Assembly (NCBI GenBank): GCA_002269645.1
Contig: NIVC01000420.1
Location: 124,001 to 188,000, forward strand
Source of the DNA: Macrostomum lignano
Taxonomy: Eukaryota
Length of the DNA stretch: 64,000 bases
Direction of reading: 5' to 3'
Shown: positions 12,043 through 64,000 of the stretch, piece by piece
Layout of the letters: each line of letters begins with the position of its first letter
How positions within the stretch are numbered: position 1 is the stretch's first letter
Made by a program: the position numbers and the translations under genes
Notes under the pieces: generated by a model
The model's input: only the letters and a program-made list of their open reading frames with translations
What the model was told of the DNA's origin: nothing
Database searches by the model: none

Positions 12043-24625
<12,583 letters not shown>

Positions 24626-24854
24626 CGGTTTGAGAGTTCAGCCATAGACATAACTCTACTGAATGACAGGCTCAGGAGCTGTAAGTCCAAAAGCACTTTT
24701 GTGTGGTTTTCAAGCATTTGAGGCTTTTTCCATAGAAGTTGATTAATATGAATAAGTAAATTGAGGTCTCGGTAAGCTCGGCAAGTATCTAGGTGTGCCT
24801 AAATGCTCAGTAACTTAAGCTAAATGTACTTTTTCGTAGCTTCTGCTGTGTTCT

Positions 24855-25696
<842 letters not shown>

Positions 25697-26599: not shown

Positions 26600-28618
26600 T
26601 TATAAGTCGGCCCGAATAAGTACAAACAGGTTGTGCAGGTAAATGCCTTTCTCCGTGTAGTTCAAACTGTTCAGCCCATCCTTGTTCATAACGTCTCTGA
26701 CCCGGCTCCAGTGAGGCCAGGGCATTGTGTTAGTAATCACGTCGCTCGAATGCTTCAGATTAACGAACCTGAAATGTTCGCGAGTTTATAGTGAAATGGT
26801 AGTCATAGCTAAACGGGACATCTTGTCTTAAATTCATCGGTCTCCTACCTGGCCACGTGGCCTCTAGGGTAGAAAATTCGCATCCCGCGGAGCCCCAGCC
26901 GAGAGGCCAGCTCGTCGTCCTCCCTGCCCCATCCGTAGTACCGGTTTGAGTTGCCATTGACTCTCTCGAACGCCTGCTTGCTGATTGCCGCCGAGCCGCC
27001 AAGGAAATTGTTGTACATCCGGCCTCGATGGTACTTCTGGGTGGCGTCCCCCTCCTGACGCATAGCCGAGATCATCAGCTTCGGCGAACGGACGCAGTCG
27101 TAGATGTTGCCGACATTCTCAGGCACTTTGTCTGCGTCCTGATCGAGGGAGCGGGTTTTTGATATCATATCAAGTCAGGCTGTCTGGGTGGTTAGATACA
27201 AATTATTTGTCAGTCAGATGTTCCACTAAAATAGATGCACATTATAAAGAAACATATCTCAATGTACATTCACATTTAAGCTACACAACAGATCAGTCAG
27301 GTGTAAAGGAAGGGTTTTGTAGCCTAGAGGTTAGAGCATCGGACTCACGACTTGAAGGTCGGGGGTTCGATTCCCGATCCAATTGAAACAATCTGTTTCC
27401 TTGAGCAAAGATACTTAACTCTGAATTGTTTCAGTTCACCTAGCTGTATGATGGGCTGGGGTAATTGAGGGTGTATGTGGCGACCCCCCAGTCCTTGGAC
27501 TCAACAGCCGTACGCAGCCTTCAGATGCGCCCCGCTATAGCTGCGGCTGAGCTGTCGGTTGCACACCTGGCCCAACTGAGCAGGTGTAATCAATTATTAT
27601 TACTATTATTAGTTCAAGCATCTTGACGATTATTTTTCACATGCATGCATTTTCAAATAGTCAATAAAAACCCCTTCCACTTGGGTCATTTAGATGTTAG
27701 GCCTACTGTAGACAAGTACAAAACAAAGCACATTCTGGTTTTGACTTTGTGCTTTTTGCAGTGTCCAAAAAGCCCTCCTTACGAGCTAATTAACTAGAAT
27801 GATACGAAGCCACGGATTCATAAAGATCTACTTACGTGCAGCACGAAGCAGTCAAACTTGGCAAACTGTTCGGCCACTCGGAAGCCAACGTTGAGCAGTT
27901 TGGCGCGGTTGAACAGCTTCGTATTCGCCTGCTCAATCACGAAGATGCCGTAGGCGATGTTCTGCTGCTGCAGCAGGGTCTGTATATAGGGCACGAACTT
28001 GTCGAGATTCTCGCTTCGGTTCCGGTACGGCACCAGGACGGCGGTTTTCGACAGCGGCGGCCAGCAGCTCCTGGGCGACCAGAAGCCGCCTCGGTAAGTC
28101 GGTCGAGCAAACGGAAAGCTGGAGGTCGGCTGGTTCAACAGGTGGGCCAGGTTCTTGTCTGGCGGACGGCGGCAGGCAGACAGATTCTTTGCGGTGTTGT
28201 TTGGCGCGTTTAGAAGATTTGGAGCAACCGCGGCTGGCGATTCGGTCAGCTTGGTGAGATGTCGGTAAAGCTGCGGGTAGACCATCTGGAATCGCTTCCA
28301 ACCAGTCGAGTTGCCTGACTTTGAGCTCGGCACCAGCATAGCGGCCAATTCGTTGAAGGGATCAAATCGGAGCCCTGTTGAGGTCGTCGGTCGAAGATTC
28401 TTCCTCCACGAGTTGTCTCGACGATTTGTATCGTTAAAATCACCACCGCTGTAGCTATTGACGAGCCGGAACGGCAGCCAGGCAATTTCCTGACTCAGTT
28501 TGCGACCCCTGACGGAGCCGGTCTGACCAGCTGTCATCAGCAAGACGAAGGTCAGGCACAGAGCGCACAAACCGATGATGACGCTCTGCTTGCGAGTCAG
28601 GGCGCGAGACTCCGTCAT
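26600..28618 (-). CDS. GT7-family beta-1,4-galactosyl/GalNAc-transferase, type II membrane protein, 3 exons, 413 aa
   Basis: Exons 28618-27836, 27138-26849, 26768-26600 (1242 nt). N-terminal TM anchor, VPYRNR, FNRAKLLNVGF, metal-binding H|DAD across the first junction, GWGREDDE, KH motif and DGLNSL. Confidence 0.93.
27312..27612 (+). mobile_element. tRNA-derived SINE family 1, full-length copy, in GT7 intron 1
   Basis: A-box TAGCCTAGAGG, B-box GGTTCGATTCC (27364-27374), central TCCTTGAGCAA...CAGTTCACCTAGCTGTA domain and (ATT)n tail. Two more copies in the window. Confidence 0.88.
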
Positions 28619-31229: not shown

Positions 31230-31794
31230 TTAAGAATCTTAGTTTTCTAAACAAAAAGCTTTATGATTATCAGCAGAGCTATCAGAAAGGCAAGTCATAT
31301 CAAAATATGGACATAGGGTCTGCCTCCTATCAAAGGTAAAAACAATTTTGATGCAGAAAAAATGCAAACCTCAGGTCTCCTTATTGTCTTTCTTCGCTGA
31401 ATCTGCCTCCTAAAATAGCTTAAAAACTTGAATAGATAAAATAGAGATACAGAAGGCGCATTGATTTACACAAAGATCTTCCAACTATAAAAAAAGATGT
31501 AGCAAAAATGTGCTTTTCTAAATGTATATTCACCCCTGTTACTTACAGTAGACAGTAGTCTAAGGTAGGTCTTAAATTAATTTTTTGTTTTCTTGAGATG
31601 TTTTAGAAAAAAATAATATTTTAAAAGAGAAACCGACAAAATTAGATTTTTGAAAACTCAAGGATGTACGTACTTGCTTTTCTAATGTGAGCAATGCAAC
31701 TCAATCAGAGTGTTGCGTAATAAAATTTCGATCGTCAGACTTGTTCACAGTTTTTATCGTTCTTATTGGTTTGGTCAAAAATGGCGCCAAGGCC

Positions 31795-34700
31795 TCAGGC
31801 TGGCGCGGTGGCGCCGGTCCCGCTGCCGGCCGCTTTGCACAGCGTGAGAACAGCACCGATGACCAGCGACAGCGCGGCGGCCGAGCACACGACAGCGCCG
31901 AGGCCGACGAGCTTGCGGAAGCTGGACAACTGGCTGATGTCTGCGCCAGCAGCGCCTTTGCTTTTGAGTATTGCAATGATGCGCTCGCAGCCAGCTATGC
32001 GGCAGGTGACGTTCTCCAGACCGCTTCCCGGACACGTGACTGATTCGGCGGCTGACGGAGCTGGACAGTTGCACAGGCGCTGGCGGTACATGAAGCCGCT
32101 GTTGAACGGCCCGGCTGTGAAATTGCCCCAAGGACACCAGGCTGTTGGAGCAGAACTCGTTGATGCAGCGCCGGTGGTGGACGCTGGGGTCGTGGTGGCG
32201 CAGGCGGTTGCATTGCACGGATAGTGCTCGACTGAGACGCCCGAGCAGGCGACTCCGATGTCATTGGGTGCGGAACAGTTGCACTGTCGGGTGCGCGACA
32301 CCGCACCATAGGTGTATACGAGTTCAGACCAGGCGCACCAACTGCCATTTACCTGAGCCAGCCAATCTGTCGTGTTACCTTGACACGTCTCTCCCAGTAC
32401 TGACGCCGGTGGGCACTCGCAGGTTCGATTCCGGACGCCCCAGCCGCCTTCGACGGTGTAGTTGCTCCAGGCGCACCAGCTACCGTTGACAATCTGGCGC
32501 GTGTCCACAGCCGAGCCGGGGCAGACAGTTGAACCTCCAAAGTCGCCGCCAGTCGGACAGCTGCAGTTTCGCTGTCGGGTCTCGTTGCCAGACCCGTCGG
32601 CTGCGTAGGCGGACCAGGCGCACCAGGTCGCGTTTATAGAGAGGCCAGACTCGGTCGAGTTTCCCGAGCAGACAGCTGAGCCTCCGTGGGCTGGCACAGC
32701 AGGACAGGCGCAGCTGCGGTTCCGCGTGCCAACGCCGGTGGCAGGGTCGACAATGTAGCTGGACCAGGCGCACCAGGCTGCGTCCTGCTTCAATCCGGTG
32801 TCGTTTCCACTTCCGGGACAGTCGGTGCCCCCGAAGGCCACAGCCGGACAGTTGCACGCCCGAGTTCGTGTACCGTAGTCTCCTCCAGGTGACAGGGTGT
32901 AGCTACTCCAGGCACACCAACTACCATTAATCACCACCTGAGTCTCATTGGCAGCTCCGATGCAGTCGGCACCGCCGTATGCCGGGGCGGAGCAGTTGCA
33001 ACTTCTCGCTCTGGTACTATTAGCGCCAGAAACTATGTAGGGTCCCCATGGACACCAGGTGCCGTTAACTACCCTCTGAGTCTCACTAGCATTGCCTGGA
33101 CAGGGTTGGCCGCCGAACGCGGGCGCTGAGCAGTTGCAAAGTCGCGAACGGTTGCTAAACTCCCCGTTGACTTGATAAGCGCTCCATGCGCACCAGCTGC
33201 CGTCCACTGCGGAGCCCGATTCGGTTGCCGAACCAACACAGTCCACGCCGCCGTACTCAGCTGCACTGCAGTTGCACTGACGCGTTCTCGTCCCGACGCC
33301 ACCAGCCACAGAGAAGGCACTCCAGCCACACCAGCTGCCATTGATGACTGTGCCAGAGTCGGTTGCTGGTCCTGCACAGTCGACACCGCCGTACGCTGGT
33401 TTGCTGCAGTTGCATTGTCGTGTTCTTGTTCCAACCCCTCCTGTCACTGAATAGGCGCTCCATCCGCACCAGGTACCATTAACGACCGTACCAGAGTCAG
33501 TGCCAGAACCGGGACAATCAACTCCGCCGTACGATGGTGAGCTACAGTTGCACTGACGAGTTCTAGTCCCGATGCCGCTGGACACTGCGAATGCACCCCA
33601 ATCGCACCAGGTGCCGTTCACTGCCGTACCGGAATCGCTAGCGGAGCCGACGCAGTCGTTGCCGCCGTACGCCGGAGCGCTGCAGTTGCACTGTCGCGTT
33701 CTAGTTCCAACTCCAGAAAACACAGAGAACGGGCTCCAACCGCACCAGCTGCCGTTAACGACAGCTCCTGAGTCGATGGCAGACCCGGGGCAGTCTGTAC
33801 CGCCATACGCTGGAGCGCTGCAGTTGCACTGACGTGTCCTAGTGCCGACGCCTGAAGCCATGGAGAAGGCGCTCCATCCGCACCAGCTACCATTTGTTAC
33901 CAAACCCGTGTCATTTCCGCTGCCAGGACAGTCCAATCCGCTGTTTGCCGGTGCCGGGCAAGCGCAGGCGCGAGTCCGGGTGGCAAAACCTCCGCCTGCC
34001 GGTGCGTAGGCAGACCACGGGCACCAAGTCCCGTTGACTACTGCCCGCCATTCGGTGCTGTTTCCCTCGCATGTTGTGCCGTTGCCAGCAACGCTCGGAC
34101 AGCTACAGTTCCGTTCGCGCATCTGCCACTCGCTGCTCACTGTACTCCAGTCGGTCCAGTTGCACCAGCCGCCGTTGATGTCTAGCTGGTCGCATACGTT
34201 CAAATTGGACTTCTCCAGATCGGAGATCTCTTCGAATAGCCATACAGTAGGAGTGCTTGATTGCAGAGTGAGCACAGAGTAGCCGCTGACAGTGCTTGGC
34301 GCCAGGAAGTATCCGGCAGTATCGTTGAACGAAGATTTTATTGTGTACAGTCCACTGCCGCCACTGCCACCGGCTGAGTCAACAATCCAAAATTCGCGTT
34401 CTTTTGTTATGTTCTCAAAAGTGGCGTCTGCAACATCGGAGGACCAAGCGTCAGCCGGGGTGTAGCATGGCACAACGCTTCTGAAGATGAAGAAACCGTT
34501 AGGCTGAGGCATGGCCTCCCACATGACTGCGGCTTCGGTGCTTGGAGCGGTCAGAGCCAGTCGTCGCGAACCGTAAGCTGCCAGTGGAGCTGTGGAATTC
34601 GCCGCGGCAATGCTAGCGTTACAAAAACTTCCGCCGCTGCCGCAGCCAGTCTGCAGGTAGATCCTGTAAAAGCCCCAACGTAGCGCGAGTGTCTTGATGC

Positions 34701-35484
34701 CAACGTAGCTTCTGTAGTAGGGGCAGAATCGGATGCGCTTATTGGGCTGGTAGTAGCGCTCTGTACTGCACCAGATCAGGTACCAGGGAAAGCCGGCCCC
34801 ACTGGTGCAGTCGTCGTAACACTTTCCATTATAGTAGAATGGAAAAGTACAGTTAGCATAAGGATCAGCCTGGGTGTATATGACGGAATAGCTGCTCAGC
34901 TGCGGCGTGATGTAGGCCGGCTCTGATGCGTTAAGCCGGGCGCAGCTCTGCGATGCCGCACCAGAAATTGTATAAGCGCAGTATTTGAAGTTGTTATCGA
35001 TGATAGCGCTCTCTGCAGTGGTGGCGCACCACGGCTCAGTTGTAGTGGTCAGGCAGTCATAGTGACACTTGCCGTTATACCGAAACGGGAACACACACTT
35101 GGTCCCGGAGCCGAGGCCAGCGTAGAGTACAGACGGCTCGGAACTCTGAGCCGCGGTTGCCAGACCGGAACAGTTTTCCTGCGTCAGGTTCGCCAGCCGA
35201 TAGTTGCAGTATCGCCACAGGGTGCTGCTGGCGCCGTAGTCGCAGGAGGTCGCGCACCAGAAGCGGCACTGGCCGCTCGAGCAATACTCGGTGCAATCGT
35301 TGTAAGTGTTGGAGCCGTCCGCAAATGGGAAATAGCAGACGCTGCCTGAGCCGCCCCCAGTGGTAGAGATTGTGACTCTGCTGTCTGAAGTTGAGTTGGG
35401 GGGATTGCAGCTGAGCGCTAGGGAAATCTGAATCAGCAGCAAGAGAAGCAGGGGCAGCAGACGCTGTCCAACTGTCAGGATCAT
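31795..35484 (-). CDS. Intronless type I membrane glycoprotein: signal peptide, 3x fibronectin type II, ricin-like beta-trefoil segment, 15 atypical TSP1-like repeats, TM helix, short tail (1229 aa)
   Basis: 3.7-kb open frame (first ATG at 35484; the track starts at a TTG). Leu-rich signal peptide; three C-x-FPF...C...WC.T...C FN2 units; WIVDSAG..GLYTIKS ricin-B-like motif; 15 W-C-x-W...R-x-R-x-C-x-C...C repeats; TM LVGLGAVVCSAAALSLVIGAVLTLC. Confidence 0.93.
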   Translation of the reverse strand: MILTVGQRLLPLLLLLLIQISLALSCNPPNSTSDSRVTISTTGGGSGSVCYFPFADGSNTYNDCTEYCSSGQCRFWCATSCDYGASSTLWRYCNYRLANLTQENCSGLATAAQSSEPSVLYAGLGSGTKCVFPFRYNGKCHYDCLTTTTEPWCATTAESAIIDNNFKYCAYTISGAASQSCARLNASEPAYITPQLSSYSVIYTQADPYANCTFPFYYNGKCYDDCTSGAGFPWYLIWCSTERYYQPNKRIRFCPYYRSYVGIKTLALRWGFYRIYLQTGCGSGGSFCNASIAAANSTAPLAAYGSRRLALTAPSTEAAVMWEAMPQPNGFFIFRSVVPCYTPADAWSSDVADATFENITKEREFWIVDSAGGSGGSGLYTIKSSFNDTAGYFLAPSTVSGYSVLTLQSSTPTVWLFEEISDLEKSNLNVCDQLDINGGWCNWTDWSTVSSEWQMRERNCSCPSVAGNGTTCEGNSTEWRAVVNGTWCPWSAYAPAGGGFATRTRACACPAPANSGLDCPGSGNDTGLVTNGSWCGWSAFSMASGVGTRTRQCNCSAPAYGGTDCPGSAIDSGAVVNGSWCGWSPFSVFSGVGTRTRQCNCSAPAYGGNDCVGSASDSGTAVNGTWCDWGAFAVSSGIGTRTRQCNCSSPSYGGVDCPGSGTDSGTVVNGTWCGWSAYSVTGGVGTRTRQCNCSKPAYGGVDCAGPATDSGTVINGSWCGWSAFSVAGGVGTRTRQCNCSAAEYGGVDCVGSATESGSAVDGSWCAWSAYQVNGEFSNRSRLCNCSAPAFGGQPCPGNASETQRVVNGTWCPWGPYIVSGANSTRARSCNCSAPAYGGADCIGAANETQVVINGSWCAWSSYTLSPGGDYGTRTRACNCPAVAFGGTDCPGSGNDTGLKQDAAWCAWSSYIVDPATGVGTRNRSCACPAVPAHGGSAVCSGNSTESGLSINATWCAWSAYAADGSGNETRQRNCSCPTGGDFGGSTVCPGSAVDTRQIVNGSWCAWSNYTVEGGWGVRNRTCECPPASVLGETCQGNTTDWLAQVNGSWCAWSELVYTYGAVSRTRQCNCSAPNDIGVACSGVSVEHYPCNATACATTTPASTTGAASTSSAPTAWCPWGNFTAGPFNSGFMYRQRLCNCPAPSAAESVTCPGSGLENVTCRIAGCERIIAILKSKGAAGADISQLSSFRKLVGLGAVVCSAAALSLVIGAVLTLCKAAGSGTGATAPA

Positions 35485-38337: not shown

Positions 38338-38507
38338 GCTCTCTCCTGCCCTGATGCTAGCTCGTACTGCTCTCTCCTCCCCAGATGCTAGCTCGTACTG
38401 CTCTCTCCTCCCCAGATGCTAGCTCGTACTGCTCTCTCCTCCCCAGATGCTAGCTCGTACTGCTCTCTCCTCCCCAGATGCTAGCTCGTACTGCTCTCTC
38501 CTCCCCA
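38338..38507. repeat. 31-bp minisatellite (CTCGTACTGCTCTCTCCTCCCCAGATGCTAG), about 5.5 copies, between two direct repeats of about 55 bp
   Basis: Tandem units; flanking repeats at about 38243-38298 and 38514-38570. Confidence 0.9.
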
Positions 38508-38765
38508 TACGCTCACGTGTTCGTTGGTCATCAGGACCCTGTCATTCTATCAGAGTGGATCCTCCACCGCAACATTGGTTTCTAAGCAACAGCTAAGCAA
38601 CACGAATAGATGTTATAACACTTGTTGCGCACCCACTCACGCCAAAAGACTCCACTACGAATTTAAATTTCGTCGCTCGAGTAAAAAGACGTAGAATGCA
38701 TGCAACGTCGAGTTTTAACCATTGGTATCAATACACAAATCAAATTGAAGAGTAGCAACACACAA

Positions 38766-41700
38766 TTACTCAGCAATGTACACATAGTACACCCAATAAC
38801 CCAGGTTAAACATGCCGAACGACAGAGGAAACGCAGCTCTCGAGATCCTGTCGATCATCTCAGCGCTGCTAACGAACTCCTCCTCCTGCAGGCTGCCGTG
38901 GCTCCCACCGAATGGACTGTCGGAGTCGCCGCTACCGACAGACTGGAAGGCGACCCGTCTGCGCAGGCCGCCGATCCCACCGCCGCCATCACCCGAGGTG
39001 GCGCCAGCCGCGCCAGCACCGACGCTTCGAGAATTATTAATAAGGGTATCCGTCTCGCAGCTCCCGGTAGCAGCGTCCGCCTCTCGGTTCATGAAAGTCA
39101 TCATCGGGTTGGCCTGAGAGCGGTTCTGAAAATTGAATGCAACAAATGTCTTGTGAGATTGTCGTTGTCAGGTACAAACAGACTCTCCTCTCCTCTCCTC
39201 TCCTCTCCTCTCCTCTCCTCTCCTCTCCTCTCCTCTCCTCTCCTCTCCTCTCCTCTCCTCTCCTCTCCTCTCCTCTCCTCTCCTCTGCTCTGCTCTCCTC
39301 TCCTCTCCTCTGCTCTGCTCTCCTCTCCTCTGCTCTGCTCTCCTCTGCTCTGCTCTCCTCTCCTCTGCTCTGCTCTCCTCTGCTCTGCTCTCCTCTCCTC
39401 TGCTCTGCTCTCCTCTCCTCTGCTCTGCTCTCCTCTGCTCTGCTCTCCTCTGCTCTGCTCTCCTCTCCTCTCCTCTCCTCTCCTCTGCTCTGCTCTCCTC
39501 TCCTCTCCTCTCCTCTCCTCTCCTCTGCTCTGCTCTCCTCTCCTCTGCTCTCCTCTCCTCTGCTCTGCTCTCCTCTGCTCTGCTCTCCTCTGCTCTGCTC
39601 TGCTCTCCTCTGCTCTGCTCTCCTCTCCTCTGCTCTGCTCTCCTCTCCTCTGCTCTGCTCTCCTCTGCTCTGCTCTCCTCTCCTCTGCTCTGCTCTCCTC
39701 TGCTCTGCTCTCCTCTCCTCTCCTCTCCTCTCCTCTCCTCTCCTCTCCTCTCCTCTCCTCTCCTCTCCTCTCCTCTCCTCTTATCTCCTCTCCTCTCCTC
39801 TCCTCTCCTCTCCTCTCCTCTCCTCTCCTCTCCTCTCCTCTCCTCTCCTCTCCTCTCCTCTCCTCTCCTCTCCTCTCCTCTCCTCTAGGTGACAAACTGT
39901 TAAGAAGTTTTAATTAAATGACACTTAACGGCATACCCTCTTGTTAGATCCAACGCTATTGTCTCTTGCCTCGGCCAGCGCTGCACTCCGCTCGTCCAAC
40001 ATCCTGCGCAGGTTCTCCCAGCGTTCCAGAGTGCTGTGCTGCCGGGCCAGCACGTTCGCAATGGCGTACTCGATCAGGGCACCGAACACGAACACCAGGC
40101 AGGTGGACATCCACACGTCTATGGCCTGATTGGGACAGTGAGGGTTTGTGCTGTGTCATTTACAATCATTGGTCTACATTTCTTGATACGATCCCTTAGA
40201 TATCCTCGGAAAAGCTACAGAAGGGCTCATCTCAAAAATCTCGTGACGCAAACGGCAAAGCAGTCAAAGCGCTCTATAGCTTAAACTTTGCATCTTTTGC
40301 TTTCTCTTCCCCAGCCAGCATTTCCTGGAGCTTCATCGCCAACTCTGAATGCATTTCTGTTGACACGTAGAAACTATAAAAAGTTGTAAACACGATCGTA
40401 GCCGCTCCAGCAATACGGGCAGCCAACAGAAAGGTTGAATGACAAAGCAAATTTTCTGGTCTGCTTTTGCTGAACAAAAAGCAGTTGAGCCTCTATTTGC
40501 TCACCCGGAGCTACGGACAGGAAGTTGGACTCCCAAAGCGGAGCATCCGGCTTTCTTCTCGCCCAGTTCTGGCTTCTGGACTCGGCAGAGTTGATGGAGT
40601 ACATTGTCAGAGCAATTTCCCCTCAGCATTCACGTCCATTTTTTCTCGGTCTCCCTGCTCCCTTCTCTATCTGATCTGTTCATTCAGCTTGGCTCTTTGT
40701 TAGGAAAACAAACCACGTTAAAAGTTTAGACAAGTTAGCCAGCCCCCGCTTTAACAACTGAGAACTTATCAGATTTCGATGGATGCATCAACTTAAATGA
40801 GTGGCTGTCAAAATTATAAAGTATTCTTTGATTATCAATCAATTTATCCTAACAGAGTGAGTTTCGGCAAGTACTCAGGTGAATAATAGGCTGCTTGCGT
40901 CACATTCGAAGGAGGCTGTAAGATTTTATGTGAATTAATAATAATAGTAATTGATTAAACCTGCCCTGGGCAGATGTGCAACCGACAGCTCAGCCGCAGC
41001 TATTGCGCGGCGCATCTGAAGGCTGCGTACGGCTGTTCAGTCCAAGGACTGGGGGAGGGGGGGTCGCCACACACACCCTCAGTTCCCCAGGCTATTGCAG
41101 ACACCCATTTTACAGCTGGGTGAACTGAAGCAATGCAGAGTCAAGTAGTGTCTTGCTCAAGGACACAAGCTGTTCCGATTGGGTCGAGAATCGAACCCCC
41201 GACCTTTCAGTCGTGGCTACAAGCCCCTTATGAACGTAGAAAATTGAGAAGCGAACTCCATCCCCTTCACAAGAGAGTAAAGGCACTTTCTTAGCTAAGT
41301 AAAATTCGCAGCAGCTTCCAACAGTGCAGTCAGAGAAAGCTCTCCGAATTTGGTTTCCCCTCTCTCCCCCCATCCTCCCCCTGCCCTGCCTGCCAAGCGA
41401 ATAAAGACGTCTGCGACGGGTCGGCTGGCGCAAAAAGTAGGAAATTCCTTCTAGAAGAAGTGAGTGCCTTTTTCTTTGGGCGGTGGAGGTCAACCAACCG
41501 ATGCTGCTAGTGAGACCGGCTTAAAAATTGGGTCCAAATTGAATTATCCACCCCCCCCGAAAGCTGCTGGAGACTGGCGGCTGATCCCAGTGGGAAATGA
41601 AAGTGGCTGGGGTACATAAGTACGGCTTGAGCTGAGGAGAATGAAGGAAGTTTCTTTTATCCCTTTCCTCATCTGACATCAGCTACTTAGTTTTCTTATT

Positions 41701-44700: not shown

Positions 44701-47700
44701 ACATACCCATACACTGTACACATCGGCAGCTAATGAGCGATCAAACGCCTTGTGCGTGACCTTCTTTGTTAAAGCTATAAATCAATAACGAAAGGTACCC
44801 CTGAAAGACGCGGAAGCGAACTCACTTTTGACTAAAAGTCACCTCGCCGCTCGGTTTAACCCTTAGCAGCAAATTCGGCGTGGTGATCTCGTGAAAATTG
44901 CCTCGTTTCTCGTTGATAAAATACAAATCAGGGACCCACAGTTCGGATTTCTTTGAGTTTAGGGTTAGCGACTCGTTGTAGCCCCGATGGGCGTATGCCA
45001 GCCGCGTGTCGTTCCAGTACTGCCTCAGGAACATGTTGACGGAATAGTCCTGAGAACGAGGATGTTGGACAGAAATTTTAATTTATTCTTGCTTGAAAAA
45101 ATCAGGAAAGGATTAAAAAACAGATGCCTCGATAAAGCATGATTTATCCTGATAAAAATAAATTACATTTTCACTAGCAATAGTTTTTCCGGTAACAAAG
45201 AATTGAAGCAATCTCAGTAATGACAGTCAGATCCAGAATCTCAGCAATGACAGTCAGATCCAGAATCTCAGCAATGACAGTCAGATCCAGAATCTCAGCA
45301 ATGACAGTCAGATCCAGAATCTCAGCAATGACAGTCAGATTCAGAATCTCAGCAATGACAGTCAGATTCAGAATCTCAGCAATGACAGTCAGATCCAGAA
45401 TCTCAGCAATGACAGTCAGATTCAGAATCTCAGCAATGACAGTCAGATTCAGAATCTCAGCAATGACAGTCAGATCCAGAATCTCAGCAATGACAGTCAG
45501 ATCCAGAATCTCAGTAATGACAATCAGATCCAGAATCTCAGCAATGACAGTCAGATCCAGAATCTCAGCAATGACAGTCAGATCCAGAATCTCAGCAATG
45601 ACAGTCAGATCCAGAATCTCAGCAATGACAGTCAGATCCAGAATCTCAGCAATGACAGTCAGATCCAGAATCTCAGCAATGACAGTCAGATTCAGAATCT
45701 CAGCAATGACAGTCAGATTCAGAATCTCAGCAATGACAGTCAGATCCAGAATCTCAGCAATGACAGTCAGATCCAGAATCTCAGTAATGACAATCAGATC
45801 CAGAATCTCAGCAATGACAGTCAGATCCAGAATCTCAGCTATGACAGTCAGATCCAGAATCTCAGCAATGACAGTCAGATTCAGAATCTCAGCAATGACA
45901 GTCAGATCCAGAATCTCAGCAATGACAGTCAGATCCAGAATCTCAGCAATGACAGTCAGATCCAGAATCTCAGCAATGACAGTCAGATCCAGAATCTCAG
46001 CAATGACAGTCAGATCCAGAATCTCAGCAATGACAGTCAGATTCAGAATCTCAGCAATGACAGTCAGATTCAGAATCTCAGCAATGACAGTCAGATCCAG
46101 AATCTCAGCAATGACAGTCAGATTCAGAATCTCAGCAATGACAGTCAGATTCAGAATCTCAGCAATGACAGTCAGATCCAGAATCTCAGCAATGACAGTC
46201 AGATCCAGAATCTCAGTAATGACAATCAGATCCAGAATCTCAGCAATGACAGTCAGATCCAGAATCTCAGCAATGACAGTCAGATCCAGAATCTCAGCAA
46301 TGACAGTCAGATTCAGAATCTCAGCAATGACAGTCAGATCCAGAATCTCAGCAATGACAGTCAGATCCAGAATCTCAGCAATGACAGTCAGATCCAGAAT
46401 CTCAGCAATGACAGTCAGATCCAGAATCTCAGCAATGACAGTCAGATCCAGAATCTCAGCAATGACAGTCAGATTCAGAATCTCAGCAATGACAGTCAGA
46501 TTCAGAATCTCAGCAATGACAGTCAGATCCAGAATCTCAGCAATGACAGTCAGATCCAGAATCTCAGCAATGACAGTCAGATCCAGAATCTCAGCAATGA
46601 CAGTCAGATCCAGAATCTCAGTAATGACAGTCAGATGCAGAATCTCAGTAATGACAATCAGATCCAGAATCTCAGCAATGACAGTCAGATCCAGAATCTC
46701 AGCAATGACAATCAGATCCAGAATCTCAGCAATGACAGTCAGATCCAGAATCTCAGCAATGACAGTCAGATCCAGAATCTCAGCAATGACAGTCAGATTC
46801 AGAATCTCAGCAATGACAGTCAGATTCAGAATCTCAGCAATGACAGTCAGATCCAGAATCTCAGCAATGACAGTCAGATCCAGAATCTCAGCAATGACAG
46901 TCAGATCCAGAATCTCAGCAATGACAGTCAGATCCAGAATCTCAGTAATGACAGTCAGATGCAGAATCTCAGTAATGACAATCAGATCCAGAATCTCAGC
47001 AATGACAGTCAGATCCAGAATCTCAGCAATGACAATCAGATCCAGAATCTCAGCAAGGACAGTCAGATCCAGAATCTCAGCAATGACAGATTCAGAATCT
47101 CAGCAATGACAATCAGATCCAGAATCTCAGCAATGACAGTCAGATCCAGAATCTCAGCAATGACAGATTCAAAATCTCAGCAATGACAATCAGATCCAGA
47201 ATCTCAGCAATGACAGTCAGATTCAGAATCTCAGCAATGACAGTCAGATCCAGAATCTCAGCAATGACAGTCAGATCCAGAATCTCAGCAATGACAGTCA
47301 GATCCAGAATCTCAGCAATGACAGTCAGATCCAGAATCTCAGCAATGACAGTCAGATTCAGAATCTCAGCAATGACAGTCAGATCCAGAATCTCAGCAAT
47401 GACAGTCAGATTCAGAATCTCAGCAATGACAGTCAGATCCAGAATCTCAGCAATGACAGTCAGATCCAGAATCTCAGCAATGACAGTCAGATCCAGAATC
47501 TCAGCAATGACAATCAGATTCAGAATCTCAGCAATGACAGTCAGATTCAGAATCTCAGCAATGACAGTCAGATCCAGAATCTCAGCAATGACAGTCAGAT
47601 CCAGAATCTCAGTAATGACAATCAGATCCAGAATCTCAGCAATGACAGTCAGATCCAGAATCTCAGCAATGACAGTCAGATCCAGAATCTCAGCAATGAC

Positions 47701-50700
47701 AGTCAGATCCAGAATCTCAGCAATGACAGTCAGATCCAGAATCTCAGCAATGACAGTCAGATCCAGAATCTCAGCAATGACAGTCAGATTCAGAATCTCA
47801 GCAATGACAGTCAGATTCAGAATCTCAGCAATGACAGTCAGATCCAGAATCTCAGCAATGACAGTCAGATTCAGAATCTCAGCAATGACAGTCAGATCCA
47901 GAATCTCAGCAATGACAGTCAGATCCAGAATCTCAGCAATGACAGTCAGATCCAGAATCTCAGCAATGACAGTCAGATCCAGAATCTCAGCAATGACAGT
48001 CAGATCCAGAATCTCAGCAATGACAGTCAGATTCAGAATCTCAGCAATGACAGTCAGATTCAGAATCTCAGCAATGACAGTCAGATCCAGAATCTCAGCA
48101 ATGACAGTCAGATCCAGAATCTCAGCAATGACAGTCAGATCCAGAATCTCAGCAATGACAGTCAGATCCAGAATCTCAGTAATGACAGTCAGATGCAGAA
48201 TCTCAGTAATGACAATCAGATCCAGAATCTCAGCAATGACAGTCAGATCCAGAATCTCAGCAATGACAATCAGATCCAGAATCTCAGCAATGACAGTCAG
48301 ATCCAGAATCTCAGCAATGACAGTCAGATCCAGAATCTCAGCAATGACAGTCAGATTCAGAATCTCAGCAATGACAGTCAGATTCAGAATCTCAGCAATG
48401 ACAGTCAGATCCAGAATCTCAGCAATGACAGTCAGATCCAGAATCTCAGCAATGACAGTCAGATCCAGAATCTCAGCAATGACAGTCAGATCCAGAATCT
48501 CAGTAATGACAGTCAGATGCAGAATCTCAGTAATGACAATCAGATCCAGAATCTCAGCAATGACAGTCAGATCCAGAATCTCAGCAATGACAATCAGATC
48601 CAGAATCTCAGCAAGGACAGTCAGATCCAGAATCTCAGCAATGACAGATTCAGAATCTCAGCAATGACAATCAGATCCAGAATCTCAGCAATGACAGTCA
48701 GATCCAGAATCTCAGCAATGACAGATTCAAAATCTCAGCAATGACAATCAGATCCAGAATCTCAGCAATGACAGTCAGATTCAGAATCTCAGCAATGACA
48801 GTCAGATCCAGAATCTCAGCAATGACAGTCAGATCCAGAATCTCAGCAATGACAGTCAGATCCAGAATCTCAGCAATGACAGTCAGATCCAAAATCTCAG
48901 CAATGACAGTCAGATTCAGAATCTCAGCAATGACAGTCAGATCCAGAATCTCAGCAATGACAGTCAGATTCAGAATCTCAGCAATGACAGTCAGATCCAG
49001 AATCTCAGCAATGACAGTCAGATCCAGAATCTCAGCAATGACAGTCAGATCCAGAATCTCAGCAATGACAATCAGATTCAGAATCTCAGCAATGACAGTC
49101 AGATTCAGAATCTCAGCAATGACAGTCAGATCCAGAATCTCAGCAATGACAGTCAGATCCAGAATCTCAGTAATGACAATCAGATCCAGAATCTCAGCAA
49201 TGACAGTCAGATCCAGAATCTCAGCAATGACAGTCAGATCCAGAATCTCAGCAATGACAGTCAGATCCAGAATCTCAGCAATGACAGTCAGATCCAGAAT
49301 CTCAGCAATGACAGTCAGATCCAGAATCTCAGCAATGACAGTCAGATTCAGAATCTCAGCAATGACAGTCAGATTCAGAATCTCAGCAATGACAGTCAGA
49401 TCCAGAATCTCAGCAATGACAGTCAGATCCAGAATCTCAGCAATGACAGTCAGATCCAGAATCTCAGCAATGACAGTCAGATCCAGAATCTCAGTAATGA
49501 CAGTCAGATGCAGAATCTCAGTAATGACAATCAGATCCAGAATCTCAGCAATGACAGTCAGATCCAGAATCTCAGCAATGACAATCAGATCCAGAATCTC
49601 AGCAAGGACAGTCAGATCCAGAATCTCAGCAATGACAGATTCAGAATCTCAGCAATGACAATCAGATCCAGAATCTCAGCAATGACAGTCAGATCCAGAA
49701 TCTCAGCAATGACAGATTCAAAATCTCAGCAATGACAATCAGATCCAGAATCTCAGCAATGACAGTCAGATTCAGAATCTCAGCAATGACAGTCAGATCC
49801 AGAATCTCAGCAATGACAGTCAGATCCAGAATCTCAGCAATGACAGTCAGATCCAGAATCTCAGCAATGACAGTCAGATCCAGAATCTCAGCAATGACAG
49901 TCAGATTCAGAATCTCAGCAATGACAGTCAGATCCAGAATCTCATCAATGACAGTCAGATTCAGAATCTCAGCAATGACAGTCAGATCCAGAATCTCAGC
50001 AATGACAGTCAGATCCAGAATCTCAGCAATGACAGTCAGATCCAGAATCTCAGCAATGACAGTCAGATTCAGAATCTCAGCAATGACAGTCAGATCCAGA
50101 ATCTCAGCAATGACAGTCAGATCCAGAATCTCAGCAATGACAGTCAGATCCAGAATCTCAGCAATGACAGTCAGATTCAGAATCTCAGCAATGACAGTCA
50201 GATCCAGAATCTCAGCAATGACAGTCAGATTCAGAATCTCAGCAATGACAGTCAGATCCAGAATCTCAGCAATGACAGTCAGATCCAGAATCTCAGCAAT
50301 GACAGTCAGATCCAGAATCTCAGCAATGACAGTCAGATTCAGAATCTCAGCAATGACAGTCAGATCCAGAATCTCAGCAATGACAGTCAGATCCAGAATC
50401 TCAGCAATGACAGTCAGATCCAGAATCTCAGCAATGACAGTCAGATCCAGAATCTCAGCAATGACAGCTGCTGGTAAGATTCAGAGAATGAGCACATCCC
50501 AGCAGACAGACAGAAGTCAGATATGGCGGTTGATTAAAAGTACACGATTCCGCGGTCAGTCTGCTCACTACACTACAGTGATGAGCATGAATACTAAGTG
50601 CTCAATCTCTCCAGTTTCCCACATATGCCTGCTAAAACTTCTGGCAAACACAAACAAAAGGCCTCAGAGCAGGGCATTTAGGAGCACTTCAGATAAATCT

Positions 50701-52990
50701 GCTTGGAAATGGCTGCGGCATTCAGCTCCCAATTTTCTCTCTGCATGCCCTCCTCCACTCTTCCCTACTTCCAAAAGGCTTTGCCGCCGGTTGAGAAGTT
50801 AAATGTGACGCCAATTTCCCACAGAAAACTCGCGCGTCTGCGCACTGCAGGTCGCAACTCATTTGCCACTTCTAAGAAACGAAGTTTACCCAGGGACCGA
50901 CGGAAACTACTCAAACTAAGAGATCTCACAGCCTATTAGCTCATTCTGAGCGAGTGTGTACTCAATCAGAAATACGATGATTTCTATCGCTAGAAAATCG
51001 CTCTCACCATATCGATTACGTTGATGGAACTCATCGCGTGAACCATTAGTGACACTCTGACAATGGTTGTTTTGCCTGCAATTTTTCGGTTGCAAAAGAA
51101 ACACTGTAATTTATTGCATTGGACACTGACACAAATTGAGCTACCGACACAAGAGTTGATATCATACATGTACTCAACTATTTTAGCAAGCACCAATTTT
51201 ACTAATGCTATTCGTAACAGTGCACCAACGAGATCGAATTCTCTTCACATATAGAGAAAGTGAAGTTTAGAAGAGCTTAGCCATTCACTACTTGGCCCGC
51301 ATAGTAGGGCTAGGTACTCTTAGAGCGCCGAGCTGCACTCGATGAAGATGGGACGGCAGGAGAAACTTGGGGGAACCCCCCGTCCCCCTTTACCCCGGTC
51401 GCCGGGTCAGCCGTAGCGCCAGGCTCTTTGTCACGCGCCCAGACCGCCTCCCCAATGCTGTTCTCTCAATTAACTGCGACCCAAGCCAGAGACGGAGATT
51501 CTCAATCTGCAATCCAGACTCCCTCAATTCTCTCTGCACGTAATTCTCTGGTGAGTCTCTTGAGACAACCCCAACCACCAATCCCCAACCCGGGGATAGG
51601 TGCAGGAGACAAGTTCATACAGTCTAACGGACGAAGGAGCTGAGGGGAAGGCAAGGGGAGAATCTGGGGAAGTGGTAAATCAATGCAAGAAAATCTGGTT
51701 GGTCTGAGTCGTCTCATCCACGACGACTGTGTTGCGATTTTCCTTGAGAAATAACCTTCGAGGAGGGGAAGGTAAAGAGAGAGACAAAGGGAAATGGGGT
51801 GAGATGAAGGGAAGGGAGAAAGATGCATAGCGAAGGAGAGAGATGCAGGGAAAGGGAGAGAGATGCAGGGAAAGGAAGAGACATGCAGGGAAAGGGAGAG
51901 AGATGCAGGGAAAGGGAGAGAGATGCAGGGAAAGGGAGAGAGATGCAGGGAAAGGGAGAGAGATGCAGGGAAAGGAAGAGAAATGCAGGGAAAGGGAGAG
52001 AGATGCAGGGAAAGGGAGAGAGATGCAGGGAAAGGGAGAGAGATGCAGGGAAAGGAAGAGACATTCAGGGAAAGGGAGAGAGATGCAGGGAAAAGAAGAG
52101 ACATCCAGGGAAAGGGAGAGAGATGCAGGGAAAGGGAGAGAGATGCAGGGAAATGAAGAGAAATGCAGAGAGAAGGGAGAGAGATGCAGGGAAAGGAAGA
52201 GAAATGCAGGGAAAGGGAGAGAGATGCAGGGAAAGGAAGAGAAATGCAGGGAAAGGGAGAGAGATGCAGGGAAAGGAAGAGACATGCAGGGAAAGGGAGA
52301 GATGCAGGGAAAGGAAGAGACATGCAGGGAAAGGAAAAGAGATGCAGAGAGAAGGGAGAGAGATGCAGGGAAAGAAAGAGACATGCAGGTAAAGGGAGAG
52401 AGATGCAGAGAGAAGGAGAGAGATGCAGGGAAAGGAAGAGAGATGCAGGGAGAAGGGGGGAGATGCAGGGAAAGGGAGAGAGATGCAGGGAAAGGGAGAG
52501 AGATGCAGGGAAAGGGAGAGACATGCAGGGAAAGGGAGAGAGATGCAGGGAAAGGGAGAGAGATGCAGGGAAAGGGAGAGAGATGCAGGGAAAGGGAGAG
52601 AGATGCAGGGAAAGGGAGAGAAACGAAGGAGCTGCATTCCTAGTGCAATTGAGTGACATCAGCACGCCCCTCACCTGTGTACATTGACGGCGGAATCGAT
52701 TTGTCATATTTCTCAAATATTTTCGCAATAAAATCGCGCATCGTGTCATTGTTGTGGCCAATTCTGAAGTGGTCATTGATTTCAATTGAACGATTAAAAT
52801 TCCAGCTTTGAGTATTTTCTAGCATTTTGAGTACTTAAAAAATCGAACAGACTGCTCACCGCAGCTTAATGTCGGCTTGCAGTCCTCCGCAGAGGCAGGC
52901 AAATGCCAGGCAGCTGGCAACGAAAAAGTCGCCCAATTGGCGACGAAGTCTTTCTCGACTGCCGCCGCTGATGCGACCGGCGGGCGGCAT
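38766..52990 (-). CDS. Anion-selective Cys-loop ligand-gated ion channel subunit (GlyR/GluCl-like), 9 coding exons, 501 aa
   Basis: Exons 52990-52860, 52763-52675, 51075-51008 (68 nt), 45049-44826, 44246-44164 (83 nt), 43537-43394, 43218-42989, 40125-39937, 39113-38766. Total 1506 nt in frame. Signal peptide, FLRQYW, WVPDLYF, Cys-loop [21 protein letters not shown]1 [10 protein letters not shown]2 PARISLG, M3 AIDVW, M4 [10 protein letters not shown]. Confidence 0.95.
39183..39886. repeat. (CTCCT)n/(CTCTG)n pentanucleotide microsatellite, LGIC last intron
   Basis: Direct reading. Confidence 0.97.
40938..41235 (-). mobile_element. SINE family 1 copy, in LGIC intron 7
   Basis: Minus-strand B-box GGTTCGATTCT; same body and (ATT)n tail as 27312-27612. 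Confidence 0.88.
45208..50467. repeat. 27-bp satellite (ATGACAGTCAGATCCAGAATCTCAGCA), about 195 copies with higher-order repeats, LGIC intron 3
   Basis: Very homogeneous units; variant marker CAGCAAGG at 47051, 48609 and 49600. Confidence 0.97.
51770..52622. repeat. 20-bp purine-rich minisatellite (AGATGCAGGGAAAGGGAGAG), LGIC intron 2
   Basis: Direct reading. Confidence 0.95.
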
Positions 52991-53029
52991 CGTTCCAGAT
53001 TCGGATTCCGAATTATCTGCCGCTGTGAA

Positions 53030-54760
53030 GTGACGGGGTGGTGAGTTTATGTTTACCTGTGTCTGTAGCTTATCAGTAACGGGGTGGTGAGTTTATGTTT
53101 ACCTGTGTCTGTGGCTTATCAGTGACGGGGTGGTGAGTTTATGTTTACCTGTGTCTGTGGCTTATCAGTGACGGGGTGGTGAGTTTATGTTTACCTGTGT
53201 CTGTAGCTTATCAGTAACGGGGTGGTGAGTTTATGTTTACCTGTGTCTGTGGCTTATCAGTGACGGGGTGGTGAGTTTATGTTTACCTGTGTCTGTGGTT
53301 TATCAGTGACGGGGTGGTGAGTTTATGTTTACCTGTGTCTGTAGCTTATCAGTGACGGGGCGGTGAGTTTATGTTTACCTGTGTCTGTGGCTTATCAGTG
53401 ACGGGGTGGTGAGTTTATGTTTACCTGTGTCTGTAGCTTGTCAGTGACGGGGTGGTGAGTTTATGTTTACCTGTGTCTGTGGCTTATCAGTAACGGGGTG
53501 GTGAGTTTATGTTTACCTGTGTCTGTAGCTTATCAGTGACGGGGTGGTGAGTTTATGTTTACCTGTGTCTGTGGCTTATCAGTGACGGGGTGGTGAGTTT
53601 ATGTTTACCTGTGTCTGTAGCTTATCAGTGACGGGGTGGTGAGTTTATGTTTACCTGTGTCTGTGGTTTATCAGTGACGGGGTGGTGAGTTTATGTTTAC
53701 CTGTGTCTGTGGTTTATCAGTGACGGGGTGGTGAGTTTATGTTTACCTGTGTCTGTGGCTTATCAGTGACGGGGTGGTGAGTTTATGTTTACCTGTGTCT
53801 GTGGCTTATCAGTGACGGGGTGGTGAGTTTATGTTTACCTGTGTCTGTAGCTTATCAGTGACGGGGTGGTGAGTTTATGTTTACCTGTGTCTGTGGCTTA
53901 TCAGTGACGGGGTGGTGAGTTTATGTTTACCTGTGTCTGTGGTTTATCAGTGACGGGGCGGTGAGTTTATGTTTACCTGTGTCTGTAGCTTATCAGTGAC
54001 GGGGCGGTGAGTTTATGTTTACCTGTGTCTGTAGCTTATCAGTGACGGGGTGGTGAGTTTATGTTTACCTGTGTCTGTAGCTTATCAGTGACGGGGTGGT
54101 GAGTTTATGTTTACCTGTGTCTGTGGTTTATTAGTGACGGGGTGGTGAGTTTATGTTTACCTGTGTCTGTGGTTTATCAGTGACGGGGCGGTGAGTTTAT
54201 GTTTACCTGTGTCTGTAGCTTATCAGTGACGGGGCGGTGAGTTTATGTTTACCTGTGTCTGTAGCTTATCAGTGACGGGGTGGTGAGTTTATGTTTACCT
54301 GTGTCTGTAGCTTATCAGTGACGGGGTGGTGAGTTTATGTTTACCTGTGTCTGTAGCTTATCAGTGACGGGGTGGTGAGTTTATGTTTACCTGTGTCTGT
54401 GGCTTATCAGTGACGGGGCGGTGAGTTTATGTTTACCTGTGTCTGTAGCTTATCAGTGACGGGGTGGTGAGTTTATGTTTACCTGTGTCTGTAGCTTATC
54501 AGTGACGGGTGGTGAGTTTATGTTTACCTGTGTCTGTGGCTTATCAGTGACGGGGTGGTGAGTTTATGTTTACCTGTGTCTGTGGCTTATCAGTGACGGG
54601 GCGGTGAGTTTATGTTTACCTGTGTCTGTGGCTTATCAGTGACGGGGTGGTGAGTTTATGTCTACCTGTGTCTGTGGCTTATCAGTGACGGGGTGGTGAG
54701 TTTATGTTTACCTGTGTCTGTGGCTTATCAGTGACGGGGTGGTGAGTTTATGTTTACCTG
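53030..54760. repeat. 46-bp minisatellite (GTGACGGGGTGGTGAGTTTATGTTTACCTGTGTCTGTAGCTTATCA), about 37.6 copies, 40 bp upstream of the LGIC ATG
   Basis: Direct tandem periodicity; only a few positions vary (mainly TAGC/TGGC/TGGT and GGGT/GGGC). Confidence 0.97.
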
Positions 54761-55384
54761 TCTTATTGATAAATTTAAATTTAATTTCTTTCTGATATAC
54801 TGGCATTGCAATATACTCAAAATTTTGAATATTGCTTCGTAATTTCACAGTATGTCTAAAGATTTATCGTATCAGAGATTGAAAATCAGCTAATAACTGA
54901 TTGATTGGGTCAGTAAAGACAGGGGATCATACAGTAAAATGGGGATTCATATCCCGCCAAACAATGCGCCAAGCAAATCTGCCTTCGGCTTCAAGTTTCA
55001 AGTTTCAGGTTTTTTCTCCCAAATTAAATTTTCCAGCTTGGGGATCGAGTCAGCCTCCCAAAAACCAAGCCAGCAGATCCCCGCTTGTAAAGCAGCTCCA
55101 AAGCTTTCCAAGAAACCAAAGTTTTTAAGCCGAAGCTTCCCGCTTCGCTAATTGGGGGGGGGGCAAAGAAGATTCCGAATTCGGGAAGAAGACAAGAAGT
55201 GAGGATTTCAAGAAGAGCGAGCTTCACCAGAAAACACCAATAAGTCAAGACAGAAGCCCTAAGGATAGAATTTTTCACCCCAGCTCTCCCAGTAGATCTT
55301 TCAGGGTTGGTTTTAAACACAGAAGTGAATTATTTATGTTTGAATTCCTTTAGAGATTGATTATATTGGCATCTTGTGCTTGTC

Positions 55385-63677: not shown

Positions 63678-64000
<323 letters not shown>

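Follow-up and report, generated by a model that had tools for sequence, protein, structure and literature searches.

Introduction

The mannose-receptor family (MRC1, Endo180/MRC2, PLA2R and DEC-205) consists of type I membrane proteins whose head contains one fibronectin type II (FN2) module, followed by 8–10 C-type lectin-like domains between FN2 and the transmembrane (TM) helix and then by a short tail. The FN2 modules of this family, of fibronectin and of MMP-2/9 bind collagen-like or other extracellular matrix (ECM) ligands, and those of the seminal BSP proteins bind phosphorylcholine. The thrombospondin type 1 repeat (TSR), known from TSP-1 and properdin, is a three-stranded module with six cysteines, which are paired as C1-C5, C2-C6 and C3-C4 in the so-called group 1 and follow another pattern in group 2. 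Its folding normally depends on O-fucosylation of the CSxxC loop and on C-mannosylation, and the POFUT2 O-fucosylation site is common in TSRs without being obligatory. TSR subtypes are still being defined, for example the “type 1A” of THSD7A. TSRs also occur in the TRAP/MIC2 adhesins, type I surface proteins with a short tail that possess a vWA head, one to a few group 2 TSRs and an acidic, Trp-containing tail for motor coupling. Here we describe a gene of the flatworm Macrostomum lignano, located on contig NIVC01000420.1 of assembly GCA_002269645.1, in which an FN2 head is combined with a long array of strongly modified TSRs. The analysis covers positions 124,001 to 188,000 of that contig, a stretch of 64,000 nucleotides hereafter called the window, and all coordinates below are counted from its first letter.

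We read the encoded protein as an ECM-binding adhesion receptor carried on a glycosylated TSR rod and restricted to Macrostomum. This reading leans in part on analogy with described FN2 proteins, and we give it a probability of about one in two. In the following we set out the architecture of the protein and the TSR identity of its repeats, compare their cysteine pattern with that of TSRs throughout the Metazoa, and weigh the different explanations for the function and age of the gene.

Architecture of the Protein

The gene occupies the minus strand, and from the ATG at 35484 its open reading frame (ORF) continues without interruption for 1229 amino acids (aa). The parts of the product follow one another as a signal peptide, three FN2 modules, an orphan module of ~178 aa, 14 repeats, a Ser/Thr linker, a 15th repeat, a TM helix and a tail (Table 1). 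Judged from its sequence it is a type I membrane glycoprotein whose FN2 head is borne by a long row of modules derived from TSRs. A preliminary description, made from the letters of the stretch alone, had already noticed the intronless ORF at 31795-35484, one uninterrupted frame. Its further list of 14 contiguous repeats of ~46 aa, a Thr/Ser linker, a 15th repeat, a TM helix and a 13-aa tail is reproduced here by motif spacing and hydropathy. The N-terminal leader LLPLLLLLLIQISLALS (hydrophobic window aa 9-27) is among the two strongest 19-residue hydrophobic windows of the protein, and a signal peptide together with a single TM helix would place nearly the entire chain outside the cell. The tail, KAAGSGTGATAPA, is neither acidic nor Trp-containing, and it is not conserved in the two M. 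lignano relatives introduced below. The Ser/Thr linker is probably a spacer with putative mucin-type O-glycans.

The head is the most easily recognized part of the protein. Pfam FN2 (PF00040) matches three stretches of it (E 1.5e-10; 41.4 bits, cutoff 22.2), and when the PDB was searched by sequence, the FN2 modules of MMP-2, fibronectin and PDC-109 matched over aa 39-96, 104-170 and 203-257, so that the threefold FN2 of the preliminary description stands. The canonical C-x-F-P-F, Y-x-x-C and W-C-x-T motifs are present in every module. Each of them also has extra cysteines and a cysteine ~25 residues upstream of C1, all of which are kept in the M. lignano relatives. These additional residues make a third disulfide likely, and the modules may thus be considered as extended FN2.

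The Repeats are Predicted to be TSRs

The identity of the repeats was approached by profile search and by structure prediction. In an exhaustive hidden Markov model (HMM) search of 1.84 billion representative proteins, the repeat profile matched 2803 proteins at E<=1e-3, with values down to E 1e-164, and the best 150 of these 2803 are nearly all arrays of canonical six-cysteine TSRs. Chance cannot account for a pattern with so many matches. This was the informative search, a word-index search with the repeat profile having returned one canonical TSR fragment. A phmmer search of the PDB matched TSR2-3 of TSP-1 at 1.4e-11, and Pfam TSP_1 (PF00090) reached 23.6 bits against a cutoff of 21.6 in four stretches, matching 4 of the 15 repeats. 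Repeats 3-5 were modelled by AlphaFold2 with an alignment of 20 repeat triplets from the window protein and its two relatives, which gave a mean predicted local distance difference test (pLDDT) of 82.5 and a predicted template modelling score (pTM) of 0.45. When the model was compared with the PDB by Foldseek, all 14 matches at E<=1e-3 were TSR structures, including properdin (3.6e-6) and TSP-1 (9.5e-6), and single modules superpose on the TSRs of C7 and ADAMTS13 at 2.9-3.6 A with 38-40% identity. Taken together, the profile search, the AlphaFold2 model and the Foldseek comparison indicate that the repeats have the TSR fold, and we predict that they are thrombospondin type 1 repeats of three strands.

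The likeness to TSR2-3 of TSP-1 (PDB 1LSL/3R6B) and to properdin extends to the N-G-x-W start, the W-x-x-W ladder facing the R-x-R of strand B, C3, and C4 within GGxxCxG. The register was set by aligning an eight-cysteine SCO-spondin repeat to TSP-1: N-G-x-W-C-x-W-S-x-[FY] of the repeats corresponds to D-G-G-W1-S-x-W2-S-x-W3, the cysteine of R-x-R-x-C to C3, and that of GG-x-x-C-x-G to C4. A first register from phmmer, with WCxW on the second and third Trp of TSP-1, was dropped in favor of this N-G-x-W1 register, which the SCO-spondin alignment backs. The first Trp of the 15 W-C-x-W repeats stands at aa 440, 487, 534, 580, 626, 672, 718, 764, 810, 856, 904, 954, 1003, 1049 and 1116, and the repeat consensus is xVNGxWCxWSxYxVxxGxGTRTRxCNCSAPAxGGxDCxGSxxDxGx, in which W6, C7, W9, R21, R23, C25, C27, C37 and G39 are invariant across the 15-repeat alignment. 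The earlier claim that the TSR Trp/Arg ladder and its WxxW are retained is thus borne out, both by W6, W9, R21 and R23 in all 15 repeats and by the predicted fold.

Whereas the ladder is kept, the cysteines of the canonical module are largely gone. Neither the six-cysteine pattern of group 1 nor that of group 2 is found in repeats 1-13, which have four cysteines each and 52 in total. The CSxxCG hairpin with C1 and C2 is deleted, the A-B loop being five residues shorter, and C5 and C6 are missing in 13 of the 15 repeats; the terminal CxxxxC is restricted to repeats 14 and 15. Two cysteines have been gained instead, at W1+1 and at C3+2. W3 of TSP-1 and properdin has given way to Phe or Tyr (most repeats have Phe, Tyr or Trp as the third ladder residue), and the period of 46 residues, compared with ~57 in those proteins, is the shortest among 140 TSR-array proteins (median 57). 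A motif scan for the POFUT2 site C-x-x-[ST]-C-x-x-G found it in none of the repeats, and with the cysteine counts this agrees with the preliminary description, which had the CSxxC/POFUT2 loop absent from the repeats and the terminal CxxxxC absent from repeats 1-13. The same description had given most repeats one or two N-glycan sequons; the whole protein has 16 WxxW motifs and 48 sequons, and 39 of the 48 lie inside repeats. They occur mostly in the contexts N-G/A-S/T-W (11 times) and C-N-C-S/T (8 times), and they crowd beside the two extra cysteines.

The TRAP/MIC2 adhesins (PDB 4HQF, 4OKU), which are among the weaker PDB and Foldseek matches, are alike in being TSR-bearing type I surface proteins with a short tail. 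Their distinguishing parts, namely the vWA head, the group 2 TSRs and the motor-coupling tail, are all lacking in the window protein, where Pfam gave no match to a vWA domain.

A Coupled Pair of Cysteines

The two gained cysteines raise the question of where else they are found. For this comparison 1715 TSR repeats from the retrieved proteins were aligned to the repeat profile, and removal of duplicates and of Macrostomum sequences left ~1520 unique repeats. Both extra cysteines (W1+1 and C3+2) are present in 33 repeats, about 2% of canonical TSRs, and neither is present in 1406. The first was found alone in 4 repeats, 2 of them evident misalignments, and the second alone in 1 repeat, which actually reads D-C-E-W. 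Carriers of the pair range from Porifera to Vertebrata, that is from sponge to coelacanth, with a nemertean, molluscs, a brachiopod, a bryozoan and amphioxus among them. As eight-cysteine TSRs they include SCO-spondin (Latimeria H3AZK0 and Branchiostoma), coadhesin (Lingula, Haliotis and Watersipora), hemicentin-like proteins (Lineus and Plakobranchus) and an ADAMTS-like protein of the sponge Corticium. These repeats share the pair of W-C-x-W and R-x-R-x-C-x-C with the window repeats, but here the pair sits atop a complete six-cysteine TSR and the repeats are scattered singly among canonical ones. A search of the literature library on four- and eight-cysteine TSRs and on WCxW found no paper describing the extra pair.

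The strict co-occurrence of the two cysteines suggests that together they add one disulfide at the W1 tip. For the four cysteines of a window repeat (Ca to Cd), the simplest connectivity would be Ca-Cc with Cb-Cd, because the two-cysteine repeats described below keep only C3-C4. The canonical layer geometry also allows Ca-Cb with Cc-Cd, and the connectivity may be either of the two.

The four-cysteine form itself is found outside Macrostomum. P0009 (1655 aa) and P0047 (1452 aa), which stand for two clusters of unnamed marine eukaryote proteins in JGI/IMG and Tara metatranscriptome contigs, have cap-less arrays of the form WCxW...RxRxCxC...CxG without C1, C2, C5 and C6, in a period of 50 aa. 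They differ from the window protein in that two-cysteine repeats (C3-C4 only) are interspersed, the third Trp is kept, FN2 is lacking and the N- and C-terminal domains are others. The preliminary description had spoken of a new cysteine between the tryptophans and a CxC. Both are indeed present in 15 of 15 repeats, but they are not new to this protein, as the coupled pair of the eight-cysteine TSRs and the four-cysteine metatranscriptome proteins demonstrate. Further reduced-cysteine TSR arrays are known from unnamed assemblies and metagenomes (P0007, P0029, P0091, P0130 and P0102); some of these are two-cysteine (C3-C4 only) with a period of 53-54 aa, and others are four-cysteine with C1 and C5 and without C2 and C6. 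To judge from such sequences, the group 1/group 2 scheme does not cover the full variety of cysteine patterns in TSRs.

Relatives in Macrostomum

Among 5.8 billion clustered proteins the same architecture occurs in only two, both of M. lignano: A0A1I8FYL0 (P0001; 969 aa, 10 repeats) and BOX15_Mlig014498g1 (P0002; 873 aa, partial, 8 repeats). They align with the window protein from end to end at 44-49% identity, and the Cys, Trp and Arg residues of the repeats are all conserved. Both relatives have a signal peptide, three extended FN2 modules, the orphan module, WCxW four-cysteine repeats of 46 aa, a TM helix and a short tail, and A0A1I8FYL0 also shares the capped repeat, the Ser/Thr linker and the last repeat. 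They differ from the window protein in repeat number (10 and 8 vs 15) and in their tails, which are unrelated to the window tail. Both are annotated as FN2 only, one being misnamed “Protein-tyrosine-phosphatase”, and Pfam TSP_1 gave 20.0 bits (cutoff 21.6) or no match on them. Since Pfam TSP_1 barely detects the repeats and the relatives carry an FN2 annotation only, arrays of this kind are probably under-counted.

The protein had been called undescribed. This holds insofar as its architecture is uncatalogued, with only two M. lignano relatives under an FN2 annotation, but the four-cysteine pattern exists elsewhere. On sequence evidence we therefore consider it a lineage-restricted (Macrostomum) architecture and a new variant of a known module, less novel and less recent than was first held. 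The Macrostomum adhesive proteins ap1 and ap2 were considered and are different proteins from the one described here.

A Candidate Adhesion Receptor on a Glycosylated Rod

The stalk consists of 15 modules of predicted TSR fold in two runs (14 + 1), parted by the Ser/Thr linker. In each module the coupled pair would add a second disulfide at the W1 tip, stapling strand A to the module in place of the lost C1-C5. The CxxxxC is found only in the last module of each run, and thus neighbouring modules of a run are probably in head-to-tail contact and act as caps for each other; such contact would yield a rod about 60-70 nm long. This rod would bear N-glycans at N-G-S/T-W and C-N-C-S, and possibly C-mannose on W1. 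The C-mannosylation enzyme is reported to act on the first Trp of WxxW/C (PMC8433626), and for this reason W1 may be C-mannosylated. Deletion of the fucosylation loop implies that the rod cannot receive POFUT2 O-fucose. At the tip, the head would, if it behaves like FN2 modules elsewhere, bind phosphorylcholine or ligands of the ECM, collagen-like or other. At the other end, the short and non-conserved tail without Tyr or di-Leu motifs points to a passive tether and to adhesion rather than to signalling or endocytosis.

Several points weigh against such a receptor. The geometry between modules is uncertain in the model (pTM 0.45; 2 of 5 models at pLDDT ~50), and at this pTM a rod that is “rigid” is a presumption. 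Ligand binding by the head is proposed by analogy, and the extra cysteines and N-terminal extensions of the FN2 modules could alter the binding pocket. No fold could be assigned to the orphan module by Pfam, PDB profile search, AlphaFold2 or hhalign. The repeats are net acidic (36 K+R vs 43 D+E), unlike TSRs that bind glycosaminoglycans (GAGs), and this acidity says little about what, if anything, the stalk binds. Finally, literature searches found no paper on the Mlig014498 locus or on an FN2/TSR protein of Macrostomum.

The layout invites comparison with the mannose-receptor family, which likewise combines an FN2 binding head, a long module array, a single TM helix and a short tail. On this analogy the protein would serve in pattern recognition or scavenging: the lectin-like module and FN2 at its tip would take hold of glycans from microbes or matrix, or of collagen fragments, and bring them into the cell. 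The only PDB profile match of the orphan module, a “Ricin B lectin domain-containing protein”, would suit such a receptor, though at E 0.57 it is not significant. However, the Pfam search of the window protein found no C-type lectin domain, the stalk being made of TSR variants, and FN2 is present three times instead of once. Endocytosis motifs, whether Tyr-based or di-hydrophobic, are missing from the 13-aa tail, whose sequence the M. lignano relatives do not share, and the ricin-type fold is unverified by Pfam, AlphaFold2 and hhalign. We regard a receptor of this kind as unlikely.

The orphan module is the “ricin-like trefoil” segment of the preliminary description, a reasonable guess that stays unverified. 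It is 40-42% identical to its copies in A0A1I8FYL0 and BOX15_Mlig014498g1. Pfam at E<=10 assigned no family to the copy in the window and no ricin-B family to any of the three homologous segments, and one M. lignano copy gave an unrelated sub-threshold match to MGH1-like_GH (E 0.056). AlphaFold2 with the 3-sequence alignment gave an unusable model (mean pLDDT 34). No significant three-fold repeat was detected by hhalign among three putative subdomains (E 0.0098-0.6, probability <=4%). A word-index search for homologues of the module came back empty and missed even the M. lignano relatives, so that it gives no evidence of absence.

Comparably unlikely in our estimate is that the TSR array itself is the binding part, a multivalent binder of sulfated glycans, receptors or TSR ligands as in properdin, TRAP/CSP and SCO-spondin, with FN2 as an accessory. 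The W/R ladder, which is the known binding face of TSRs, is strictly conserved in 15 of 15 repeats and in the relatives, and the repeats are under strong purifying selection (see below). Yet an array with net acidic repeats is a poor fit to this role, up to two sequons beside the ladder would mask the basic GAG-binding groove, and the copy number varies among the relatives (15, 10 and 8), as is expected of a spacer.

To a reproductive role we assign a still smaller chance. The protein would then act on the gamete surface, or be a shed component of matrix or egg shell, its FN2 modules working as in seminal BSP and its anchor being removed after delivery. The FN2 modules do match the seminal plasma protein PDC-109, and a lineage-restricted distribution, variable repeat number and fast divergence of paralogues (44-49% identity) are common in reproductive proteins. 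On the other hand, no cleavage site is evident in the protein, and dN/dS among the repeats is low rather than elevated.

Age of the Array and Selection

Whichever ligand the proposed adhesion receptor may have, its gene appears to be old. The 873 codons of BOX15_Mlig014498g1 fill 2622 contiguous bases, and thus a single exon; the protein is 44-46% identical to the window protein. Its locus on NIVC01002590.1 has no neighbouring genes in common with the window. The sole non-coding likeness of the two loci is a satellite family (window 59017-60570 vs NIVC01002590.1, L001 12893-13407; 72-80% identity, given as 77-80% for 59-60.5 kb), which on NIVC01002590.1 lies ~300 bp downstream of the M. lignano paralogue and which points to M. 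lignano or a close congener as the source of the window. Within the window gene, the most similar repeats differ at a proportion of synonymous sites (pS) of 0.67-0.79, which is saturated, and of nonsynonymous sites (pN) of 0.11-0.19. Over all repeat pairs compared the values are pS 0.60-0.87, pN 0.11-0.37 and dN/dS 0.04-0.33. At 33179-33894 adjacent, most similar repeats have a pS of ~0.75, as random, despite 72-78% amino-acid identity; age alone may account for this, or else selection that acts against recombination among the repeats. As a tandem repeat of DNA the array has matches of only 71%. The GC content at third codon positions (GC3) is 0.65 for the window gene, 0.70 for the exon of a neighbouring beta-1,4-galactosyltransferase (B4GalT) gene and 0.69 for the paralogue. 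A foreign origin by horizontal transfer, considered for the high GC of 0.60, was rejected on these GC3 values.

From the single-exon paralogue, the saturated synonymous sites and the low dN/dS it follows that the intronless state is old and shared, and that the array is old and under purifying selection. The preliminary description had contrasted the gene with intron-rich neighbours and seen in this a hint of retroposition or recent assembly. The contrast is real for B4GalT, which is split into at least three exons, but the conclusion drawn from it does not hold in view of the paralogue, the saturation and the neighbour-like GC3. That the gene is a recent retrogene, a repeat array put together not long ago or an ORF without function is hardly credible: the split B4GalT gene beside it and a window packed with minisatellites would agree with such an origin, but 71% DNA repeat matches and all of the foregoing do not, nor do the intact 3.7-kb ORF, the conservation of every structural Cys, Trp and Arg, and a TATA-like element ahead of the ATG. 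The gene is intact in sequence, and a dead ORF is very unlikely.

The Gene and its Surroundings

The coordinates of the gene and of its predicted parts are collected in Table 1. The TATA-like TATATAAA has its 5′ end 74 nt before the ATG. Across the GC-rich repeat region (32200-34182) there are several overlapping ORFs of 110-150 aa in other frames and on the plus strand, which are by-products of the repeat composition rather than genes.

Table 1. Features of the TSR gene and its product in the window.
Feature	Coordinates	Strand	Remarks
Complete single-exon coding sequence	31795..35484	-	1229 codons + stop, TGA at 31797-31795
TATA-box-like element TATATAAA	35551..35558	-	read from sequence; putative promoter element
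Signal peptide, aa 1-25 (MILTVGQRLLPLLLLLLIQISLALS)	35410..35484	-	second-highest Kyte-Doolittle window; putative cleavage site
FN2 module 1 with N-terminal Cys-bearing extension, aa 26-95, 8 Cys	35200..35409	-	Pfam fn2; MMP-2 FN2 over aa 39-96
FN2 module 2 with extension, aa 105-171, 6 Cys	34972..35172	-	Pfam fn2 best stretch aa 130-169; fibronectin/PDC-109 over aa 104-170
FN2 module 3 with extension, aa 181-256, 6 Cys	34717..34944	-	MMP-2 and fibronectin FN2 over aa 203-257
Orphan beta-rich module, aa 257-434, 4 Cys, 4 sequons	34183..34716	-	kept in both relatives
14 contiguous TSR-derived repeats, aa 435-1095, period 46-50 aa	32200..34182	-	repeats 1-13: 4 Cys; repeat 14: 6 Cys, ends CNATAC
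Ser/Thr-rich linker, aa 1096-1112 (ATTTPASTTGAASTSSA)	32149..32199	-	17 aa, 59% Ser+Thr
Repeat 15, aa 1113-1166, 6 Cys, ends CRIAGC	31987..32148	-	same terminal repeat in A0A1I8FYL0
TM helix, aa 1192-1216 (LVGLGAVVCSAAALSLVIGAVLTLC)	31837..31911	-	highest Kyte-Doolittle window, 2.42
Cytoplasmic tail, 13 aa (KAAGSGTGATAPA)	31798..31836	-	without Tyr or di-Leu motif
AATAAG, possible variant polyadenylation signal	31762..31767	-	read from sequence; ~28 nt past stop

The B4GalT gene (26600-28618) shares its strand with the TSR gene, from which it lies ~3.2 kb downstream. Its exon 1 (27818-28618) matches Glyco_transf_7N at E 1.4e-28, and later exons carry the motifs WGWGREDDE and DGLNSLNY. An ORF on the minus strand at 14289-15242 has a weak match to a Slo-like RCK domain (24.5 bits vs a cutoff of 24); by this similarity it is a probable exon of a gene for a calcium-activated potassium channel. 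The window also contains more than 20 arrays of mini- and microsatellites (4798-10109, 16177-20530, 22176-25696, 38338-39886, 45210-54761 and 56442-63998), for example a 27-bp unit repeated 196 times at 45210-50467, a 23-bp unit repeated 124 times at 16177-18978, and (TCTG)n at 24860-25696. Such arrays give rise to long spurious ORFs in several frames and to spurious Pfam matches (HTH_Mga, Dicty_CAD and PsaF) with zero significant stretches.

Implications for TSR Evolution and Flatworm Biology

A more far-reaching reading joins these results: the four-cysteine repeats of 46 aa would be a distinct structural subclass of TSR, stacked into a self-capping rod that folds without POFUT2/B3GLCT control, in a Macrostomorpha-specific adhesion receptor. 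As a whole it is tentative, and we consider it doubtful. If it were true, uncapped modules would stack head to tail, each capping the preceding one, and the long N-glycosylated rod would be a new kind of extracellular spacer. Folding would proceed without the quality control of POFUT2/B3GLCT because the fucosylation loop is deleted. The W1+1/C3+2 disulfide, present in ~2% of ordinary metazoan TSRs including those of SCO-spondin, would have permitted the loss of two canonical disulfides.

The repeats keep the Trp/Arg ladder, have dropped two of the three canonical disulfides and would use a different staple, and they may thus be considered as a natural experiment on the limits of the TSR fold. 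The occurrence of the W1+1/C3+2 pair across the Metazoa further predicts an extra disulfide in TSRs of SCO-spondin, coadhesin and hemicentin-like proteins. Macrostomum serves in the laboratory as a model of regeneration, adhesion and reproduction, and a large, lineage-specific surface glycoprotein of this animal, amenable to RNA interference (RNAi), would be of interest both for the folding and glycosylation of TSRs and for the biology of flatworm cell surfaces.

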